Notes under the pieces: generated by a model
What the model was told of the DNA's origin: nothing
Seen by the model: the letters and a program-made list of their open reading frames with translations, nothing else
The model's database searches: none
Part shown: positions 19,412 through 44,111 of the stretch, piece after piece
How the letters are laid out: the number at the start of each line of letters is the position of its first letter
Position numbering within the stretch: the stretch's first letter is position 1
From: Oculina patagonica
Lineage: Eukaryota
Reading direction: 5' to 3'
DNA: 64,000 bases
Assembly: GCF_052425735.1 (NCBI RefSeq)
Contig: NC_135769.1
Span: 10,044,001-10,108,000, forward strand
Position numbers and translations under genes: made by a program

Positions 19412-19911
19412 NNNNNNNNNNNNNNNNNNNNNNNNNNNNNNNNNNNNNNNNNNNNNNNNNNNNNNNNNNNNNNNNNNNNNNNNNNNNNNNNNNNNNNNNN
19501 NNNNNNNNNNNNNNNNNNNNNNNNNNNNNNNNNNNNNNNNNNNNNNNNNNNNNNNNNNNNNNNNNNNNNNNNNNNNNNNNNNNNNNNNNNNNNNNNNNNN
19601 NNNNNNNNNNNNNNNNNNNNNNNNNNNNNNNNNNNNNNNNNNNNNNNNNNNNNNNNNNNNNNNNNNNNNNNNNNNNNNNNNNNNNNNNNNNNNNNNNNNN
19701 NNNNNNNNNNNNNNNNNNNNNNNNNNNNNNNNNNNNNNNNNNNNNNNNNNNNNNNNNNNNNNNNNNNNNNNNNNNNNNNNNNNNNNNNNNNNNNNNNNNN
19801 NNNNNNNNNNNNNNNNNNNNNNNNNNNNNNNNNNNNNNNNNNNNNNNNNNNNNNNNNNNNNNNNNNNNNNNNNNNNNNNNNNNNNNNNNNNNNNNNNNNN
19901 NNNNNNNNNNN
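19412..19911. other. Assembly gap (500 N)
   Basis: Run of N. Confidence 1.
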
Positions 19912-27590: not shown

Positions 27591-29183
27591 TCACGCACAG
27601 TCCAAAAGGGCAAACACCCTGCACGGTCCCCCACTTCCTCCGCGGATGAACATTGGTGCTGCATACACTGTAAAACCTTTTACGGGTAGCTGGTCCATGT
27701 TGGCGACATTTTCTAGGCCAGGGATGTTTTCTTTGTAGAGGATTTGATGGGATTCAAACATTTTTGATTGCCCATAATCAACTGATGTAGTGTCTATTCC
27801 CACTAGCTTAATCTTTCGATTTTTGACCAACCAGCGAGAGGCATCTGGGTGTATACCTGCAGACAAAAACATTATTGTTAGCTGTTTAAGAGCCATTACA
27901 CACAAAAATCGACATCTCGACAAGTTAAGCTACTTCTCATGAATGCAACCAAGAGTTACAACAAATCTATACCTATAACTATTTTGCGCGGTATGATTGG
28001 TCACTTCGTCTTCATTATATATAGCTCCATAATGCACGCGGCTTACGTCACGCGCATGCTTTACCGAGTTATAATGTACGCGGCTTACGGCACGCGTTTG
28101 AGCGGGCGTAATTTTTTAACATTTTACAAAAGAAATAAAAAACTTTCTCCTCGTGCATTGTTGAGTTAAATAAGCACTTGGGAATTTTTAAGAACACTTG
28201 GGAAGTTCGTTAAGCACTCGGCTGCGCCTAGTGCTTCTCTATGCACTTCTCTCGTGTTCATAAAACTCTCCGCGTGCTTATATAACTCAATTATGCACTC
28301 GGGTGCGTTTTTTTCAGCAGCCACAATAACAATAACAACAACAACGCATTTTTTTTAATCTCACACCTGGAAAATGCAACAAGCTAAGGTCATCTGTGTC
28401 AGTTCCGAGGTACTTTTTCTTGTCTGGCCAATGTCTTCCCCAATTAGTAAATACCAACAATATCACATCATCAGGGATCCTTCCGTGCTTTTTTTCCCAG
28501 GCCTCCAAATCACTTGTCATCAGCTGGGCATCAGGATTCTTGAAGAGAATCGAAAGAGTTTATGACAGTTACGTCAGAGGTAAAATGTACCACGTGACTG
28601 ACCGGCAAACTAAGGAAGTCATAAATAAATCCAGGTGATGGAGCAGATCTTATCTCACAACGCTCAACACCATTGCAGCTAACTTAAAGAAGGGAAGGAA
28701 GAAAGACGTGCAGCGTATCTTTAATATGCAATGTGAAGGAAAATATTTCTGGTCTATAAAGTCTCCTAAGTCAAAAAAATATAATCTTGGAAAGTCATCA
28801 CCTAACTAAATTGATTAACTTCCAAATAAAATTCATTTTACCTGGGCAGCTTTTGAAGATATATCTATCTTGATTGCAGGTCCAATGAGCTGATCAAGAG
28901 GAATTTCATGTGTTGTCCATTTGCCCTCAGCAAAATGACTCGGAGAGTCGAGATGAGTGCCTCCGTGTTCGGCGCCGCTAATGTCATTCACTGAGTAGTA
29001 ATAGCCATCATCAGTATAACCGTCAAACACTTTGGTATGCTTGAACTTGAGTGAGGTGGGCCAGTAAATGGTCTCATTGTCAAATGGATAAGAGAGCTCG
29101 ATCCACTCTTGTTTTAGTGGTCCTCCCAGGACTGGAAACCAAAACAGTGCGCTTAACGCTAGCTTTATAACAAGTGTTGTCAT
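27591..29183 (-). CDS. Cyclase-family paralog 4, intact 259 aa, secreted form without C-terminal tail
   Basis: Exons 29183-28842, 28538-28367 and 27856-27591 (780 nt). Signal-like MTTLVIKLALSALFWFPVLG; EHGGTHLDSPSHF; ends CRVFALLDCA*. Confidence 0.92.
28018..28312 (+). mobile_element. Hairpin element of the same class in the paralog 4 intron
   Basis: Long hairpin centred on GCACTCGGCTGCGCCTAGTGC. Absent from the paralog 5 intron. Confidence 0.6.
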
Positions 29184-32324: not shown

Positions 32325-32490
32325 NNNNNNNNNNNNNNNNNNNNNNNNNNNNNNNNNNNNNNNNNNNNNNNNNNNNNNNNNNNNNNNNNNNNNNNNNNNN
32401 NNNNNNNNNNNNNNNNNNNNNNNNNNNNNNNNNNNNNNNNNNNNNNNNNNNNNNNNNNNNNNNNNNNNNNNNNNNNNNNNNNNNNNNNNN
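32325..32490. other. Assembly gap (166 N)
   Basis: Run of N. Confidence 1.
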
Positions 32491-37929: not shown

Positions 37930-38223
37930 TGGGTGATCCCCAAAGATCGCGAGCGACTGGGGACGAGGTAGAACGGAAGGTGGAAGATGGTTTTCCATGT
38001 TCTATATAAAAAGGTACCCGCTTAAACTCCATTCCATAAATACAGAGGGAATAATTATTCTTATTCAGTATACATGTAAGTACAGTCATATTCGGGACGT
38101 GCTTTTGACAATAAAATGGGTCAGCATGCAGCAAGTGCTTTTTTAATGGAAGGTGACATCAGTGTCTTAATATTGTAATTCCAATACACATACAGTATAT
38201 TAACAGCAATATGTAGAGGTTTG

Positions 38224-38439
38224 GTTTGTATCTGATTTAAAAATCGGTTTAAAAATGTTGGTAAAAAACATATAAAACTGAATTTTCGGTAGCTCTCTGC
38301 TACCTTCATCAGAGTTAAAATTTAAGAGAGCTACCGAAAATTCAGTTTTATACGTTTTTTACCAACATTTTTAAACCGATTTTTAAGATCAGATACAAAC
38401 CAAATTTTTATTATGTCAAACACTGATCGCCCTAATAAC
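38224..38439 (-). mobile_element. Miniature Penelope-like insertion (inverted pLTR fragments plus tail) with 13-bp TSD
   Basis: ATGTAGAGGTTTG at 38211-38223 and 38440-38452. Arms about 38220-38297 and 38326-38404. Empty site in paralog 4 at about 27385. Confidence 0.8.
38276..38316 (-). ncRNA. Minimal type I hammerhead ribozyme
   Basis: AACT-CTGATGA-A-GGTAGC-agaga-GCTACC-GAAA-AT-TC^AGTT. Stem I AACT/AGTT, 6-bp stem II, palindromic AAUU stem III. Confidence 0.8.
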
Positions 38440-38640
38440 ATGTAGAGGTTTGACTGTACTTTGCCTGCCTAAGGGATGAAAACTACGGGTGGACTCGTTT
38501 GAAAAGACATTAAAATATTGAAGTAAAAGAAACATTTTGTAACTGATTCGTTCCCTGTTGCCTTTATAATGAAAATCGTAATACGCCGTGTTCTGAAATG
38601 CTGCTTGTTTATGTGACTGGTTAACCATATCACGTGTATA

Positions 38641-41600
38641 TCACGCACAGTCCAAAAGGGCAAACACCCTGCACGGACCACCACTTCCTCCACGGATGGA
38701 CATTGGTGCTGCATACACTGTAAAACCCTTTACGGGCAGCTGTGCCATGTAGGCAAGATTTTCCAGGCCAGGGATGTTTTCTTTGCAGAGAATTTGATGG
38801 GTTTCAAACATTTTAGACTGCCCATAATCAATTGATGCTGTATCTATTCCAACCATCTTAATTTGTCTATTTTTGACCAACCAGCGAGAGGCATCTGGGT
38901 GTATACCTGCAGACAAAAACATTATTAGGTAATGAACGTTTATTCGTTTGTCTCACGATAGAATCGCTTTGAGATGTTGATCGCGACGTTTCGACTGCAA
39001 TACTGCTAGTCTTCATCAGGCGATGAGGTCGATTGTTTACGCGTCGCTATTTATGCACGTTGGTTCGCTGTGATTGGTGCATTTCGATCCTCATTATTAT
39101 TCCGACTAACAGATGGTGTTCCCTCATAGGTCCGCTTTGTAGTTGAACGGCTGTTATGCTTTCTGATCGTAGGTATCCATGCTTCAGGAATTTCAATTCC
39201 GCTATCTCTATTGATGTTATTAGAATGAAGTCTTATTTGGATAGCCTCTTTGACCCTGCGTGTGTATCGGTGAGGGTCACGATCGATAAACTTGACTTGA
39301 TTCCATAAAGGAATATGCCCCGTTTCGTTTGCGTGCTCCGAAACTGCGGAGGTTTGTGTATGAGCAAGCCTTATGTCTCTGTCGTGTTCTTTTATCCTGT
39401 CTTGCATCGCTCTCCCTGTTTCCCCTATATATACTTTGCCGCATTCACATGGAGTTTTGTATACAATACCTTCTTGTTTGCCTGGTTCTAGGGCGTCTTT
39501 CGGTCGTACTAAGTAAGACCGAAGAGTTGTGTCAGATTTAAAGACGGTGCGAACGCCTTGTTCTTGTAGGCAGCGGCGAAGAACCTCTGATACACCTTTA
39601 ATATAGGGTAAAACCGCAGTAGATTTAAATTCCTGCGTGGGTTCGTTGTTGGCTGTTGGTCTTGTGGTCTTAGTAAGTTTTCGTATGAACGAAGACGGAT
39701 AACCGTTAGAAACAAGTACCGACGATAAATGTTTCTTTTCTTGAGAGATAACTGATGGTTTTGTTATGAGGTGTTTGGCTCGGTCATATAGACACTTAAC
39801 AATACCACGCTTCACTGACTGAGGATGGTGTGAGTCATAGGCTAAGTACTGATCAGTGTGTGTGGGCTTTCTATATACACAGCTGGTAGTAAGAAGGCCG
39901 TTTGAGTCCCTTATAACTGACGTGTCGAGAAAGGGAATGCTGTTATCTTTCTCGGTTTCCATGGTAAAACGAATAGTGGGCTGTTGGCTATTAAGATGTT
40001 GTAAAAAGCCGTCGACTTGGTCTTGATCTAATATAGTAAAAGTGTCGTCTACATATCGCTTCCAGATCTTAGGTTTGTAGATCGCACTTGCTATCGCACG
40101 CTCCTCAAAATCTTCCATGAAGATGTTGGCTATAACCGCGGAGACAGGGCTCCCCATAGCGGCTCCGTCCTTTTGTTCGTAAATTGATCCATTGTATTGG
40201 AAATACGTGGATCGTAAAACAAAGTTTAAAAGGTCGGCAATTTGTGTAGGTGTTAGGCTTGTGCGGTCAGCAAGACCGGGATCGTTTTCTAGTTTGCGAA
40301 GTGCGGCCTTTACGGCGTCTTCGATTGGCACGTTCGTAAATAAAGATTCTACGTCAAATGATACCATGATTTCCTTTTCTTGTATTCTTTCATGGTGGAT
40401 GGTATTCACGAAATGAGTAGAGTTGGTAACTGCATACTCTGATTTGCCTGTCAGTGGGGACAGGATGTCAGCTAAATGAGCCGACAAGTCATAAGCAAAG
40501 GTGTTTATACACGATACAATAGGTCTCAATGGTATATTTGATTTGTGTATCTTAGGCTGACCGTAGATCCTAGGCGGCTGTTTGTGCTTGGGCCTGATCT
40601 TGTTGTAGATAGTTTCTGATAGATGTCCACTTCGTTTTAAGCTAAGAAACTTCTCAGTGAGTTTACGGCTGAGTCGATCCGTGGGGTCTTTATTAAGAAG
40701 TTGATATGGACCCGTTTCGATTAGTGCCTTCATTTTATCATGGTAGGTGTTAGTGTCTAAAACTACACTTGCGCGACCTTTGTCGGCTGGTAGTATCATA
40801 ATAGAATCGTCTTGTTTTAAGTTGTTAAGGGCTTCATGCATTTCCTTCGTGATGTTAGGCTTTGGTGGTTCAGCCTGTTGAAGGACGCTATTTACAACAT
40901 CTTAATAGCCAACAGCCCACTATTCGTTTTACCATGGAAACCGAGAAAGATAACAGCATTCCCTTTCTCGACACGTCAGTTATAAGGGACTCAAACGGCC
41001 TTCTTACTACCAGCTGTGTATATAGAAAGCCCACACACACTGATCAGTACTTAGCCTATGACTCACACCATCCTCAGTCAGTGAAGCGTGGTATTGTTAA
41101 GTGTCTATATGACCGAGCCAAACACCTCATAACAAAACCATCAGTTATCTCTCAAGAAAAGAAACATTTATCGTCGGTACTTGTTTCTAACGGTTATCCG
41201 TCTTCGTTCATACGAAAACTTACTAAGACCACAAGACCAACAGCCAACAACGAACCCACGCAGGAATTTAAATCTACTGCGGTTTTACCCTATATTAAAG
41301 GTGTATCAGAGGTTCTTCGCCGCTGCCTACAAGAACAAGGCGTTCGCACCGTCTTTAAATCTGACACAACTCTTCGGTCTTACTTAGTACGACCGAAAGA
41401 CGCCCTAGAACCAGGCAAACAAGAAGGTATTGTATACAAAACTCCATGTGAATGCGGCAAAGTATATATAGGGGAAACAGGGAGAGCGATGCAAGACAGG
41501 ATAAAAGAACACGACAGAGACATAAGGCTTGCTCATACACAAACCTCCGCAGTTTCGGAGCACGCAAACGAAACGGGGCATATTCCTTTATGGAATCAAG

Positions 41601-43658
41601 TCAAGTTTATCGATCGTGACCCTCACCGATACACACGCAGGGTCAAAGAGGCTATCCAAATAAGACTTCATTCTAATAACATCAATAGAGATAGCGGAAT
41701 TGAAATTCCTGATAAGATAAGATAAGATAAAAACTTTATTACCGTGTCTGTGTGTTTAGCCCTTTTGGACTAATTGGGGACAAAGCATGGATACCTACGA
41801 TCAGAAAGCATAACAGCCGTTCAACTACAAAGCGGACCTATGAGGGAACACCATCTGTTAGTCGGAATAATAATGAGGATCGAAATGCACCAATCACAGC
41901 GAACCAACGTGCATAAATAGCGACGCGTAAACAATCGACCTCATCGCCTGATGAAGACTAGCAGTATTGCAGTCGAAACGTCGCGATCAACATCTCAAAG
42001 CGATTCTATCGTGAGACAAACGAATAAACGTTCATTACCTATCTTACACCACGATGAACAATATTCACATCTTTAATGACAAAAACATTATTGTTAGCTG
42101 AGCAAAAGCCAGTACACACAACAATCGTCATCTCTACTAGAAACCTCTCATGAATGCAACCAAGAGTTACAGCCAATCTGCTAACATCAATTTGGATACG
42201 TTATTGCCAATACATTTTTGTCACAACATTAGACTGTGCACAGCCCTCTATTTTTTCGTATTTTTTCGATCGATGAGCGCGGGAAAAGAACGTCGAGAGA
42301 ATTGGACGCAACGCAAAACGGGAGGCGCAAGAGGGTGGCTGATTCTCTTCCTTTTCTGCGTTAAAAAAAGAGAGGCTGTGGACAGTCTATCACAACATCA
42401 GCAGCAACAGCAACAACAATAACAAAAAAAGCAACACCAACAAAAGCACCACCACCAACAAACGTTTTTTTTTTCTTATCTCACACCTGGAAAATGCAAC
42501 AAGCTAAGGTCATCTGTGTCAGTTCCGAGGTACTTTTTCTTGTCTGGCCAATGTCTTCCCCAATTAGTAAATACCAACAATATCACATCATCAGGGATCC
42601 TTCCGTGCTTTTTTTCCCAGGCCTCCAAATCACTTGTCATCAGCTGGGCATCAGGGCTCTTGAAGAGAATTGAAAGAGTTTATGACAGTTACGTAAACGT
42701 AAATGTACCTAACAGCTAGCTGATCGGCAAACTGAGGAAGTCATGAATGAATCCATCTTGAAAAGAGGGAAATCTTGTTCCACTCCCACTTTTGCTCAGC
42801 CTCATTCACGTTTATGTAAAGAAGGGAAGAAAAACAGACGGGTAGGGTGTGTTCAATATGCACGCGTGGGAAAATTTGATGGCCTACAAAGTACTTAAGG
42901 GGGGAGACCCTTAACAACAAAATGGTTGCTATGGATGACTTCTAACCATCATATCTTTCTTGGGCACCATTAGGATCCTGAGTTTAGTTTTTGGCCATGT
43001 TTGTCCTATTGGAGGTTGCCTTCATTTTCAGTAGTCATGACCATATTTGGTAAGTCACGTGACCAGAAAACAAAACCTCTTAAAACCCACAAAGTTTACA
43101 TTTTTCTTGGCTTAAATCAACACCACGGGTAGAGTGCATTGAGAAGCAAAATTTGTAGCATGGATTTGCTGAAATTTACATTATTTTTTAGGTTATGATG
43201 TCACAAAAACTTTATGACGTCATAGCTTTTCCAATATCGCGATTCAATGACTTTAACACAGGATACTAAGAGAAGCCAAGATATGACGGTTAGAAGTCAT
43301 CGATGTTATTGTGTCTAGAAGAACTAGCTAGAACTCTAAAACACTCCTTAACGGGACGAAATTTTGATTTCAATTCAAAGAAAAGCGCTATTCATCTCTT
43401 TTTATGCTCTTTTCATGCTTTTGCATCATCATGTCAACTAAATTAATTCACTTAGGAGGCAAATTCATCAAAGGCGTGATTTTTTTCTTCCATTAGGTAG
43501 GAGAAGTGTTGGAAGACCAAGAGCAACTTGGCTTAAAATGGCAGAAAAGGAAAGAAAGCAGGAAGAGCTGGGGTAAAAAGTTGGGAAGGAATCGGTCGAG
43601 TGTTGTAATGGCAAAGAATCACTGAAGCCCTGTATGCCACCAAGACACTGATTAGATA

Positions 43659-43692
<34 letters not shown>

Positions 43693-44111
43693 GGCATGAA
43701 TAAGGGAAAGATGTTTATACCGTACTCCGACGAGAAAGGAATATAATAATCACACGAATTACATTTTACCTGGGCAGCTTTGGAGGATATATCTATCTTG
43801 ATTGCAGGTCCAATGAGCCGATCAAGAGGAATTTCATGTGCTGTCCATTTGCCCTCAGCAAAGTGACTCGGCGCGTCGAGATGAGTTCCTCCATGTTCGG
43901 CGCCGCTTAGGTCATACTTTGAGTAGTAAAAACCATCATCAGTATAACCGTCAAACACTTTGGTATGCTTGAAGTTCAGTGAAGTGGGCCAGTAAATGGT
44001 CTCATTGTCAAAAGGATAAGAGAGCTCGATCCATTCTTGTTTCAGTGGTCCTCCCAGGACTGGAAACCAAAACAGTGCGCTGAACGCTAGCTTTATAACA
44101 AGAGTTGTCAT
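38641..44111 (-). CDS. Cyclase-family paralog 5, intact 259 aa, secreted form; Penelope insertion in coding intron 2
   Basis: Exons 44111-43770, 42658-42487 and 38906-38641. EHGGTHLDAPSHF; ends CRVFALLDCA*. Very similar to paralog 4. Confidence 0.9.
38980..39024 (-). ncRNA. Minimal type I hammerhead ribozyme (Penelope pLTR, left arm)
   Basis: ATCGC-CTGATGA-A-GACT(a)GCA-gtat-TGCAGTC-GAAA-CG-TC^GCGAT. Confidence 0.85.
39051..40841 (-). CDS. Penelope-like RT plus GIY-YIG endonuclease (N-terminally truncated)
   Basis: ADKGR, PKIHK..PLRPIVS, SFDVESLFTNVP, GAAMGSPVS, RYVDD, FLD, YRKPT, GIVYK.PCECGKVYIGETGR. Confidence 0.93.
   Translation of the reverse strand: MHEALNNLKQDDSIMILPADKGRASVVLDTNTYHDKMKALIETGPYQLLNKDPTDRLSRKLTEKFLSLKRSGHLSETIYNKIRPKHKQPPRIYGQPKIHKSNIPLRPIVSCINTFAYDLSAHLADILSPLTGKSEYAVTNSTHFVNTIHHERIQEKEIMVSFDVESLFTNVPIEDAVKAALRKLENDPGLADRTSLTPTQIADLLNFVLRSTYFQYNGSIYEQKDGAAMGSPVSAVIANIFMEDFEERAIASAIYKPKIWKRYVDDTFTILDQDQVDGFLQHLNSQQPTIRFTMETEKDNSIPFLDTSVIRDSNGLLTTSCVYRKPTHTDQYLAYDSHHPQSVKRGIVKCLYDRAKHLITKPSVISQEKKHLSSVLVSNGYPSSFIRKLTKTTRPTANNEPTQEFKSTAVLPYIKGVSEVLRRCLQEQGVRTVFKSDTTLRSYLVRPKDALEPGKQEGIVYKTPCECGKVYIGETGRAMQDRIKEHDRDIRLAHTQTSAVSEHANETGHIPLWNQVKFIDRDPHRYTRRVKEAIQIRLHSNNINRDSGIEIPEAWIPTIRKHNSRSTTKRTYEGTPSVSRNNNEDRNAPITANQRA
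41713..41783 (-). mobile_element. 71-bp LINE/SINE 3'-end fragment with AATAAA and (TCTTA)n tail, inserted in the right Penelope arm
   Basis: Absent from the left arm (CCTGA|AGCATGG). Similar TGTCCCCA..TAG...GACAC..AATAAA end at about 9170-9228. Confidence 0.7.
41943..41987 (+). ncRNA. Minimal type I hammerhead ribozyme (Penelope pLTR, right arm)
   Basis: Identical to the left-arm copy. Stem I ATCGC/GCGAT; predicted GUC cleavage after 41982. Confidence 0.85.
42230..42389. mobile_element. MITE TAGACTG...CAGTCTA with 9-bp TSD
   Basis: TCACAACAT at 42221-42229 and 42390-42398. Confidence 0.8.
43495..43692 (+). mobile_element. RTE-clade LINE 3' fragment with (GAT)n tail
   Basis: GRRSVGRPRATW..AEKER..LG.KSW...W....EAL followed by about 11 GAT repeats. 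Confidence 0.65.

Follow-up and report, generated by a model that had tools for sequence, protein, structure and literature searches.

The last intron (intron 2) of an isatin hydrolase-like gene of Oculina patagonica, which belongs to the cyclase family PF04199, lies on the minus strand and forms part of a tandem array of five paralogs (as paralog 5), carries just upstream of its final splice acceptor a 3151-bp insert that, judged from its sequence, very probably arose when a canonical Penelope-like element (PLE) with its own endonuclease inserted very recently, most likely in one event and with a neutral to mildly harmful outcome for the host. The architecture of the insert is a standard by-product of PLE integration, and the hammerheads, the AATAAA signal and the hairpin that it introduces into the host intron are parts of the element itself and not devices that evolved for the host. 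The locus is a clean natural record of PLE integration, in which the empty site is kept in a paralog and the two arms derive from two different start sites of reverse transcription. All positions are those of the window, i.e., the whole 64,000-nt stretch of DNA that was analysed, and the features are collected in Table 1.

Table 1. Features of the insert and of the surrounding host gene, in window coordinates.
Feature	Position	Strand	Remarks
Host exon 3 (last)	38641..38906	-	87 aa + stop; 100% match to XP_078347764/5 (P0001)
Host 3' splice site TGCAG	38907..38911	-	AG = 38908-38907; directly downstream of the acceptor-proximal repeat copy
Target-site duplication, acceptor-proximal	38912..38926	.	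Host sense AATAATGTTTTTGTC; T-rich tract of the acceptor
Longer 5'-truncated PLE copy, 1960 bp	38927..40886	- (host sense)	'Short' 3' terminus without tail; 95-99% identical copies genome-wide
AATAAA in host sense	38939..38944	-	13 nt before the PLE short end, then the U/GU-rich target repeat
Minimal type I hammerhead	38980..39024	- (host sense)	Helix I from 39024; core CUGAUGA 39019-39013; C17 38985
596-aa open reading frame	39051..40841	-	Reverse transcriptase (RT) domain, DKG motif, candidate GIY-YIG-type motifs
Inverted 5'-truncated PLE copy (right arm)	40887..42041	+	1085 nt of PLE sequence; antisense to host
Nested terminal fragment of another multi-copy repeat, 70 bp	41713..41782	-	AATAAA + (TCTTA)3 end on the minus strand
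Second intact copy of the same hammerhead	41943..41987	+	In host pre-mRNA, antisense partner of the sense ribozyme
PLE 'tail' extension, 36 nt	42042..42077	+	Right end only; without counterpart at 38927
Target-site duplication, distal	42078..42092	.	First 3-4 bases GAC(A) may equally continue the PLE tail
Original 5' part of host intron 2	42093..42486	-	GT donor 42486-42485; displaced CTAAC consensus 42097-42093
Host exon 2, 172 nt	42487..42658	-	Basis: gene-model match and paralog comparison

The insert (38927-42077) is bounded on both sides by an exact copy of GACAAAAACATTATT (38912-38926 and 42078-42092), and the two flanks, joined with a single copy of this repeat, are identical to the sequence of paralog 4 across the junction (CAGCTAACAATAATGTTTTTGTCTGCAG followed by GTATACACC), which proves both the insertion and its target. 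An earlier reading made from the letters of the window (hereafter, the sequence-only reading) had described a 3151-bp insert with a 15-bp target-site duplication, and the exact repeat together with the empty site in paralog 4 bear it out. The real duplication may be 12-15 bp long, because GAC(A) usually comes after the tail in other copies of the element. A joint connecting 38923 to 42146 in two DNA runs (X3, X9) was considered as a possible empty allele and rejected, since an empty allele would rejoin 38926 and 42093 directly; the 34-letter side of this joint (42146-42179) is a block shared with paralog 4, which is naturally without the insert.

The insert is composed of two 5'-truncated copies of one young PLE, arranged head to head and meeting at the joint 40886/40887. 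Its inverted arms pair over a total of 1084 nt with one mismatch and enclose a loop of 877 nt; specifically, the outer part (38926-39184 / 41783-42041, 259 nt) has 0 mismatches and the inner part (39184-40009 / 40887-41712, 826 nt) has the only one (40006/40890). The near-perfect hairpin of about 1.08 kb that had been proposed for the pre-mRNA is therefore present in its length and complementarity, but it is not uninterrupted, as the 70-nt block at 41713-41782 breaks the right arm. This block occurs in the right arm only, being found neither in the left arm nor in the other PLE copies examined, and it corresponds to the last 70 bp of a separate repeat, for which a first-look search of the genome gives at least 155 candidate matches. 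Two further origins of the block, a retained PLE intron and a piece copied from the host gene (to which it bears 15-16-nt resemblances), were considered and discarded: GT..AG ends are lacking, no other PLE copy examined contains the block, and it belongs to that separate repeat. The terminal repeats of the insert are inverted only, and a direct pseudo-LTR is not present.

That the insert is a Penelope-like element present as two partial copies in inverted orientation, as the sequence-only reading had also proposed, is supported by the RT domain, the DKG motif and the inverted arms. The open reading frame of the longer copy matches the RVT_1 domain (E=3.9e-10, residues 98-285), its N-terminus carries the PLE DKG motif (ILPADKGRA) and its translation shows candidate GIY-YIG/CCHH-type motifs (GIVYKTPCECGKVYIGETGR ... 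EHANETGH). The Pfam GIY-YIG model (PF01541) gives no match on the C-terminal part of the reading frame even at E<=5; the nearest Atlas clusters to the reading frame are animal RT / GIY-YIG proteins, with GIY-YIG in 26-47% of their members. The family is young and has many members (1250 candidates in a first-look search, copies 95-99% identical), 22 of 30 further family loci that were retrieved carry its 36-nt tail, and hundreds of similar palindromes are found in the Oculina patagonica genome. At least 9 other loci are head-to-head pairs whose 3' ends point outward, and each of them combines a tailed arm with a tailless one, like the insert.

These features can be accommodated in an integration mechanism. 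The GIY-YIG endonuclease of the element would cut both strands of an AT-rich target, corresponding here to the T-rich tract of the splice acceptor, and reverse transcription would be primed at both DNA ends, producing two 5'-truncated cDNAs (1960 and 1085 bp) that are placed head to head. The arms would have different starting points, namely the 'short' site for one and the 'tail' site for the other, and a target duplication of 12-15 bp would be left behind. The origin of both arms in a single event is most likely, as suggested by their near-identity and by the family-wide pattern.

As for the splice site, the exon boundaries given by the sequence-only reading, 42487 and 38906, are right, and the acceptor AG survives while the upstream branch point is displaced, just as had been anticipated. 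The acceptor window from -20 to +3 (20 intronic and 3 exonic bases) is the same as before the insertion, and CTAAC, the former branch point with its branch A at -22, has been moved 3.17 kb away. The PLE/target junction generates a new branch-point-like CTAAT with its branch A at -19, and a further branch-point-like site, TTCAT, lies at -27. With an unaltered acceptor window and replacement branch points at hand, normal splicing of paralog 5 is plausible. The RefSeq models (XP_078347764/5) splice across the insert and give an intact 259-aa protein; the model of the submitter for the same gene (KAL9955824) has 174 aa and ends in the intron right after exon 2 (GVR*), and this early stop may be due to a failure of splicing, but equally to the masking of repeats or to an intron-length limit of the gene predictor. 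In two coral metatranscriptomes (X16, X17) no reads fall on the host exons and only PLE sequence is covered, by reads that are 95-99% alike to the insert and therefore come from other PLE copies and not from the insert in paralog 5. Contigs that encode the 259-aa protein were not found by exact matching, and a scan of JGI metagenome contigs with a paralog-5-specific exon-3 string gave no match either; exon 3 departs from that of paralog 4 starting about 39 nt past the junction.

The sense hammerhead that had been placed about 75 nt upstream of the acceptor (39024-38980) has an intact core and a predicted cut at 38985/38984, 78 nt upstream of the AG (38908-38907), and it is a minimal type I motif that came with the element, as had also been supposed, with the traits of the published minimal hammerheads (min-HHRs) and the same sequence in the other family copies. 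The catalytic core is complete (CUGAUGA ... GAAA CG UC, with the cut after the last C; C3-A9, G12-A14, A15.1, U16.1, H17), and CUGAUGA is followed by an unpaired A, i.e., an extra base after A9. Helix I (AUCGC/GCGAU, 5 bp) is open, helix II (GACU(A)GCA/UGCAGUC, loop GUAU) is closed and consists of 7 bp with one bulged base and the G10.1-C11.1 pair, and helix III is the palindromic ACGU that follows GAAA and amounts to 1 bp. A descriptor scan of the window gives 3 hammerhead matches against 0.015 expected from shuffles; genome-wide, a core pattern from which the family's own helix II was excluded gives 710 matches against 6 for the reversed control. Among these genome-wide matches helix II differs wholly between families yet pairs, which amounts to covariation, and helix III is mostly palindromic (ACGT, AATT or ATAT); within the family of the insert no covariation of the hammerhead is found, the copies being too alike. 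The Rfam hammerhead models give no match at the gathering score or at E<=10, and this miss was rejected as evidence against a hammerhead: it is expected for min-HHR variants without a real helix III, an Rfam match does not define the class, and the motif is supported by the descriptor scan and the genome-wide search. Contig ends at 39000/39002 and 41967 lie in the variable loop of helix II and represent branch points of the assembly graph, not sites of cleavage.

Regarding the consequences for the host, paralog 5 most likely suffers no harm or mild harm from the insert, and with four further tandem paralogs beside it a cost may be tolerated. Any effect would more probably come from inefficient splicing of the intron, which bears the hairpin and is now 3.58 kb long, or from polyadenylation within the intron than from ribozyme cleavage. 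Harm that does not involve the ribozyme, through premature polyadenylation at 38944-38939, poor recognition of the acceptor or retention of the intron, each of which would give the truncated 174-aa product, is nonetheless rather unlikely. The insert contains five sense AATAAA/ATTAAA signals, one of which is followed by a GU-rich downstream element and lies about 20-31 nt before the acceptor AG (this is the AATAAA of the sequence-only reading, which is present but had been placed one base off, at 38945-38940); moreover, the original CTAAC is displaced, the submitter's model ends inside the intron and hammerhead retroelements are depleted from the introns of Xenopus. All this is consistent with such harm, but the acceptor is unchanged from -20 to +3, CTAAT and TTCAT are usable as branch points and the RefSeq models splice across the insert. 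Should an effect on splicing or polyadenylation be real, the locus would be a natural test of a sense PLE end placed beside an acceptor.

Alternatively, host transcription could yield the 1.08-kb hairpin as a substrate for dicing into small RNAs, which would act as an accidental trigger for silencing the PLE family. A near-perfect long inverted repeat within a transcription unit, in a family that seems young and possibly active, would be suited to this role, but the hundreds of similar palindromes in the genome mean that the locus is not special, and we regard this outcome as improbable. Similarly, it is improbable that the insert measurably alters the output of paralog 5, be it via its own AATAAA, via dicing or editing of the hairpin or via trans-dimerisation of the sense hammerhead with the abundant family transcripts; if it did, a fresh Penelope insertion would have created, in an enzyme gene with tandem duplicates, an allele that naturally attenuates it. 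The insert is a weak candidate for host gene regulation, because insertions of such shape are common in the coral and a single masked hammerhead is unlikely to cut.

The sequence-only reading had named a ribozyme route among several possible ones, in which the sense hammerhead could cut the pre-mRNA upstream of the acceptor and pairing of the arms would mask it, resulting in a fold-dependent switch that attenuates paralog 5. The intact core in host sense and the almost perfect complementarity of the arms fit this proposal, and the abundant family transcripts (or DNA carry-over) in RNA libraries could supply a second hammerhead in trans via ACGU. However, the pre-mRNA holds one sense copy of the ACGU motif, and the helix III of the other sense hammerhead, located in the 3'UTR, is AAUU and cannot pair with it. 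Single min-HHRs show no detectable cleavage in vitro and their dimers cleave weakly (PMC4209133), no RNA-seq reads start or end at the hammerhead site of an active Anolis PLE (PMC11167929), and one of nine dimeric retrozymes cleaves in a 2026 preprint, the other eight being inactive. Furthermore, the duplex with the other arm (-112.4 kcal/mol) outcompetes the ribozyme fold (about -13 kcal/mol), so that the motif would be masked essentially always, which is not the behaviour of a switch. A ribozyme adopted by the host would be conserved at its locus and would have a competitive stable active fold; here paralog 4 does not have the motif and the other family copies carry it in identical form, which leaves nothing locus-specific about it, and the active-like fold has -12.8 kcal/mol against -15 kcal/mol for the minimum-energy fold, in which core bases are paired, and against the still more stable duplex. 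Attenuation by self-cleavage or by a fold-dependent switch is therefore very improbable, and this part of the sequence-only reading is not supported. Lastly, it is exceedingly unlikely that the palindrome was created during assembly, for instance by a chimeric long read: assemblies can go wrong at inverted PLE structures (PMC8557442), but here the halves differ from each other (the 877-nt loop is unique, and the tail and the 70-bp block each occur on a single side), the flanking duplication is exact, the same pattern occurs at other loci and a contig from another public DNA run crosses the tail/host junction (42056-42267) with 0 differences.

As a product of PLE integration, the insert resembles the inversions generated by LINE-1 twin priming, with which it shares two opposite 5'-truncated segments within one target duplication. 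In twin priming, a single event gives rise to two opposite 5'-truncated cDNA segments enclosed in a single target duplication, with the poly(A) on a single 3' end and the inverted piece in an internal position. In contrast, both outward ends of the insert are 3' ends of the element, derived from the alternative start sites (short and tail), which is what priming by the PLE enzyme on each of the two cut strands would give. With respect to its hammerhead, the amniote intronic hammerheads HH9 and HH10 and the 3'UTR hammerhead of the rodent Clec2 genes are retroelement-type type I motifs in the sense strand of host genes; they are conserved across species and form stable monomers with tertiary contacts that cleave efficiently. 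The hammerhead of the insert is likewise a retroelement-type type I motif in the sense strand of a host gene, but it resides in a fresh transposon copy, has a 1-bp helix III and is without conservation at the locus, being missing from paralog 4.

The predicted motif also resembles the min-HHRs of metazoan PLEs (Cervera & De la Pena 2014, PMC4209133), with which it shares the core CUGAUGA...GAAA...UC, the unpaired base between positions 9 and 10.1, the G10.1-C11.1 pair, a long helix II (7 bp, with a bulged base), a short helix I (5 bp) and a helix III cut down to the palindromic ACGU, implying action as a dimer. It differs from them in that the host transcript has a single copy opposite its own perfect antisense and in that the Rfam hammerhead models miss it.

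The insert as a whole is comparable to the PLEs of a 2021 study (PMC8557442) and to the Anolis Poseidon element PAc of a 2024 study in Mobile DNA (PMC11167929), in which an inverted 5'-truncated copy and a tail confined to one end have been described. They have in common that the 5' truncation is heavy and that an inverted copy, itself 5'-truncated, lies next to the first; that only one of the ends bears a tail, of 30-40 bp; that the duplicated target is AT-rich and finishes with ATT; and that a hammerhead lies within the terminal repeat region. Unlike these elements, the insert is without a direct pseudo-LTR, both of its copies are truncated and its match to the Pfam GIY-YIG model is below significance; the likeness holds at the level of PLEs. 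The PLE enzyme cleaves and extends both DNA strands in vitro and uses two start sites of reverse transcription (PMC8557442; PMC11167929), and the rule of one tail and one short end, which recurs at the 8-9 further loci, agrees with this activity.

The sequence interrupting the last intron of paralog 5 is a new copy of a Penelope-like element (PLE) of known kind, and the most likely account is that a common coral PLE inserted there very recently, to neutral or mildly harmful effect, the gene being one of five redundant paralogs. The flanking repeat GACAAAAACATTATT is present at 38912-38926 and 42078-42092, and the in silico deletion of 38927-42092 restores a base-for-base match to paralog 4 that crosses the junction and continues into the exon. 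Together, these observations confirm the 3151-bp insert proposed by the sequence-only reading, with paralog 4 as the uninterrupted sequence, and its target, which in host sense is AATAATGTTTTTGTC, directly upstream of the TGCAG that adjoins the exon. The repeat had been called a 15-bp target duplication; the repeat itself stands, but its true length is 12-15 bp, since flank comparison among family copies indicates that GAC is usually element-derived, GACA directly following the 36-nt tail in 16 of 18 other family copies (ends of loci L005-L030, fetched from the same genome). The target at this locus also had GAC at the same position (42078-42081), and hence, judging from these flanks, microhomology at the insertion site is likely. 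Either the PLE tail would really be ~39 nt long, or the priming site would prefer GAC(A) microhomology. A DNA contig from X3, one of two public DNA runs, covers 42056-42267 with 0 differences and joins the tail to the host intron; thus, the insertion exists outside the assembly. A joint of 38923 to 42146 was considered as an empty allele and rejected, paralog 4 being its best explanation.

Features of paralog 5 and its PLE insert (window positions)
Feature	Position	Strand	Description
Paralog 5 exon 1	44111-43770	minus	
Paralog 5 exon 2	42658-42487	minus	
Paralog 5 exon 3	38906-38641	minus	
Long PLE copy	38927-40886	minus	1960 bp, 5'-truncated retroelement
Inverted PLE copy	40887-42041	plus	last 1084 nt of the long copy, opposite direction
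PLE tail	42042-42077		36 nt, right arm; left arm without it
Nested block	41713-41782		70 bp, right arm; seen in no other family copy
Left-arm hammerhead	39024-38980	minus (host sense)	found by descriptor scan

The long copy, whose end forms the acceptor-proximal left arm, holds a 596-aa open frame with a DKG motif and a reverse transcriptase (RT) domain (RVT_1, E=3.9e-10), together with a GIY-YIG-type motif, seen in the sequence, that includes C-x-C and H...H; among protein-language-model clusters, those of animal RT / GIY-YIG proteins lie nearest. Because the right copy repeats the end of the left one in the opposite direction, the two lie head to head with both 3' ends outward, and the ~1.08-kb near-perfect hairpin claimed earlier is indeed present, with 1084-nt arms, one mismatch (40006/40890) and a loop of 877 nt. 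The nested block comes from a different repeat, of which it forms the terminal 70 bp; a first-look genome search gave at least 155 candidate matches to that repeat, 95-99% alike and all ending at the same base. Its minus-strand end reads AATAAAGTTTTTA(TCTTA)3, the repeat copies all carrying AATAAA plus (TCTTA)n on that strand, and any target duplication around it is at most 1 nt long; in its sequence, it resembles a severely 5'-truncated non-LTR element.

The host gene belongs to a cyclase-family (PF04199, "isatin hydrolase-like") tandem array of at least five members on the minus strand of the window, within a chromosome-scale contig (C12) of the 529-Mb source genome; N runs occupy 19412-19911 (500 bases) and 32325-32490 (166 bases) of the array. 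The protein product of exons 1-3 (259 aa) is the same as RefSeq XP_078347764/5, and the last intron (42486-38907) measures 3580 nt, against ~510 nt for the equivalent paralog 4 intron. Public gene models for paralog 5 (38641-44111) conflict: RefSeq removes the intron across the PLE to give 259 aa, whereas the submitter model KAL9955824 (174 aa) reads exon 2 through into the PLE-bearing intron and stops at GVR*, and neither is evidence for cellular splicing. When contigs from two coral metatranscriptomes and two DNA runs were placed on the window, the RNA contigs fell only on PLE sequence, with none from either metatranscriptome on host exons, and they derive from other PLE copies because they differ by 1-4% from this insert. 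Beyond these runs, a spliced paralog 5 transcript was not found by exact look-up of the 259-aa protein among public contigs or by a paralog-5-specific exon-3 string in JGI metagenome contigs. Elsewhere in the gene, ~860 bp of intron 1 (42893-43756) are missing from paralog 4 and are a further repeat insertion, since their DNA-run depth is 10-50x the single-copy level. Exon 2 and its flanks (42432-42700) are 100% identical over ~200 bp to those of paralog 4 (28315-28580), while exon 3 identity is only ~90%, a contrast that suggests gene conversion inside the array.

Of the two repeat copies, the one next to the acceptor is the original sequence, which leaves the acceptor surroundings (20 bases of intron, 3 of exon) as they were, and the former CTAAC, with its branch A at -22, now lies 3.17 kb away, in agreement with the earlier view that the AG is kept and the upstream intron and likely branch point are displaced. 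CTAAT, with its A at -19, arises where the PLE end meets the repeat; TTCAT is present at -27. In host sense, the insert adds five signals, AATAAA three times and ATTAAA twice, among them the AATAAA anticipated near the acceptor, which is at 38944-38939 rather than 38945-38940 and is followed by the U/GU-rich target repeat. Should the insert harm the gene, polyadenylation or inefficient intron removal would be the more likely cause.

The left-arm motif comprises helix I AUCGC, the core CUGAUGA followed by an unpaired A, helix II GACU(A)GCA-GUAU-UGCAGUC followed by GAAA, a two-base loop CG between A15.1 and U16.1 that creates the palindrome ACGU, and C17 at 38985 before helix I GCGAU, matching what has been published for PLE minimal type I hammerheads (PMC4209133). 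Rfam models did not detect it. The descriptor scan of the window returned three matches (both arms and a different one at 38312-38280) versus 0.015 expected in shuffles, and a genome-wide search for the core pattern, with the helix II of this family excluded, gave 710 matches versus 6 for the reversed control. These matches belong to many families (at least eight by helix II), with helix II covarying, the extra A retained and helix III mostly ACGT, AATT or ATAT. Since both searches exceed their controls, the hammerhead is, on sequence grounds, genuine and the element's own; the exact sequence recurs in 17 of 24 descriptor hits among fetched family copies, the remainder being single substitutions. 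Many core-pattern matches form pairs on opposite strands, separated by 50-200 bp; one tandem array, with a spacing of ~1.4-2.7 kb, lies at C2:7113877-7133135. The 38312-38280 motif, also in host sense (helix II GGUAGC/GCUACC, helix III AAUU), is carried by a ~213-bp head-to-head mini-insertion between AA(T/C)ATGTAGAGGTTTG repeats in the 3'UTR (38208-38452).

The proposal that the ribozyme attenuates or regulates the host gene is unsupported and runs contrary to the known behaviour of minimal hammerheads. The left-arm motif is in host sense, 78 nt upstream of the acceptor AG, and is the only sense copy with ACGU in the transcript; its right-arm counterpart is its perfect antisense, and the AAUU of the 3'UTR motif is unable to pair with ACGU. 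Cleavage of single minimal hammerheads is undetectable and that of dimers only weak (PMC4209133), dimeric retrozymes were inactive in 8/9 cases (2026 preprint), and, in an active PLE, the hammerhead site coincides with no RNA-seq read start or end, and in vitro its cleavage is dispensable (PMC11167929). The suggested fold-dependent switch fares no better: the active-like fold is predicted at -12.8 kcal/mol and the minimum-energy fold, with core bases paired, at -15.0, versus -112.4 kcal/mol for the duplex of the same 56 nt with the other arm, so strong that a permanently masked motif, not a two-state device, would describe the arrangement.

What the sequence-only reading identified, a Penelope-like hairpin insertion with a sense hammerhead near the acceptor, stands. 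The family is abundant and young (1250 candidates in the first-look search, scored copies 95-99% identical), and nine other head-to-head pairs occur among the fetched loci, two of which look like mutual duplicates; at all nine, as in paralog 5, one arm has the short terminus, which lacks the tail, and the other the 36-nt tail, and several carry AT-rich 10-15-bp duplications. Published PLE insertions likewise show an inverted 5'-truncated copy and a tail at one end only (PMC8557442, PMC11167929). A purified PLE protein was found to cut the two DNA strands and extend each of them; its reverse transcription begins at two neighbouring internal sites, which define the tail, and it prefers ATT within AT-rich DNA (PMC11167929). 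The paralog 5 insert shares the published features and is a normal product of Penelope-like integration.
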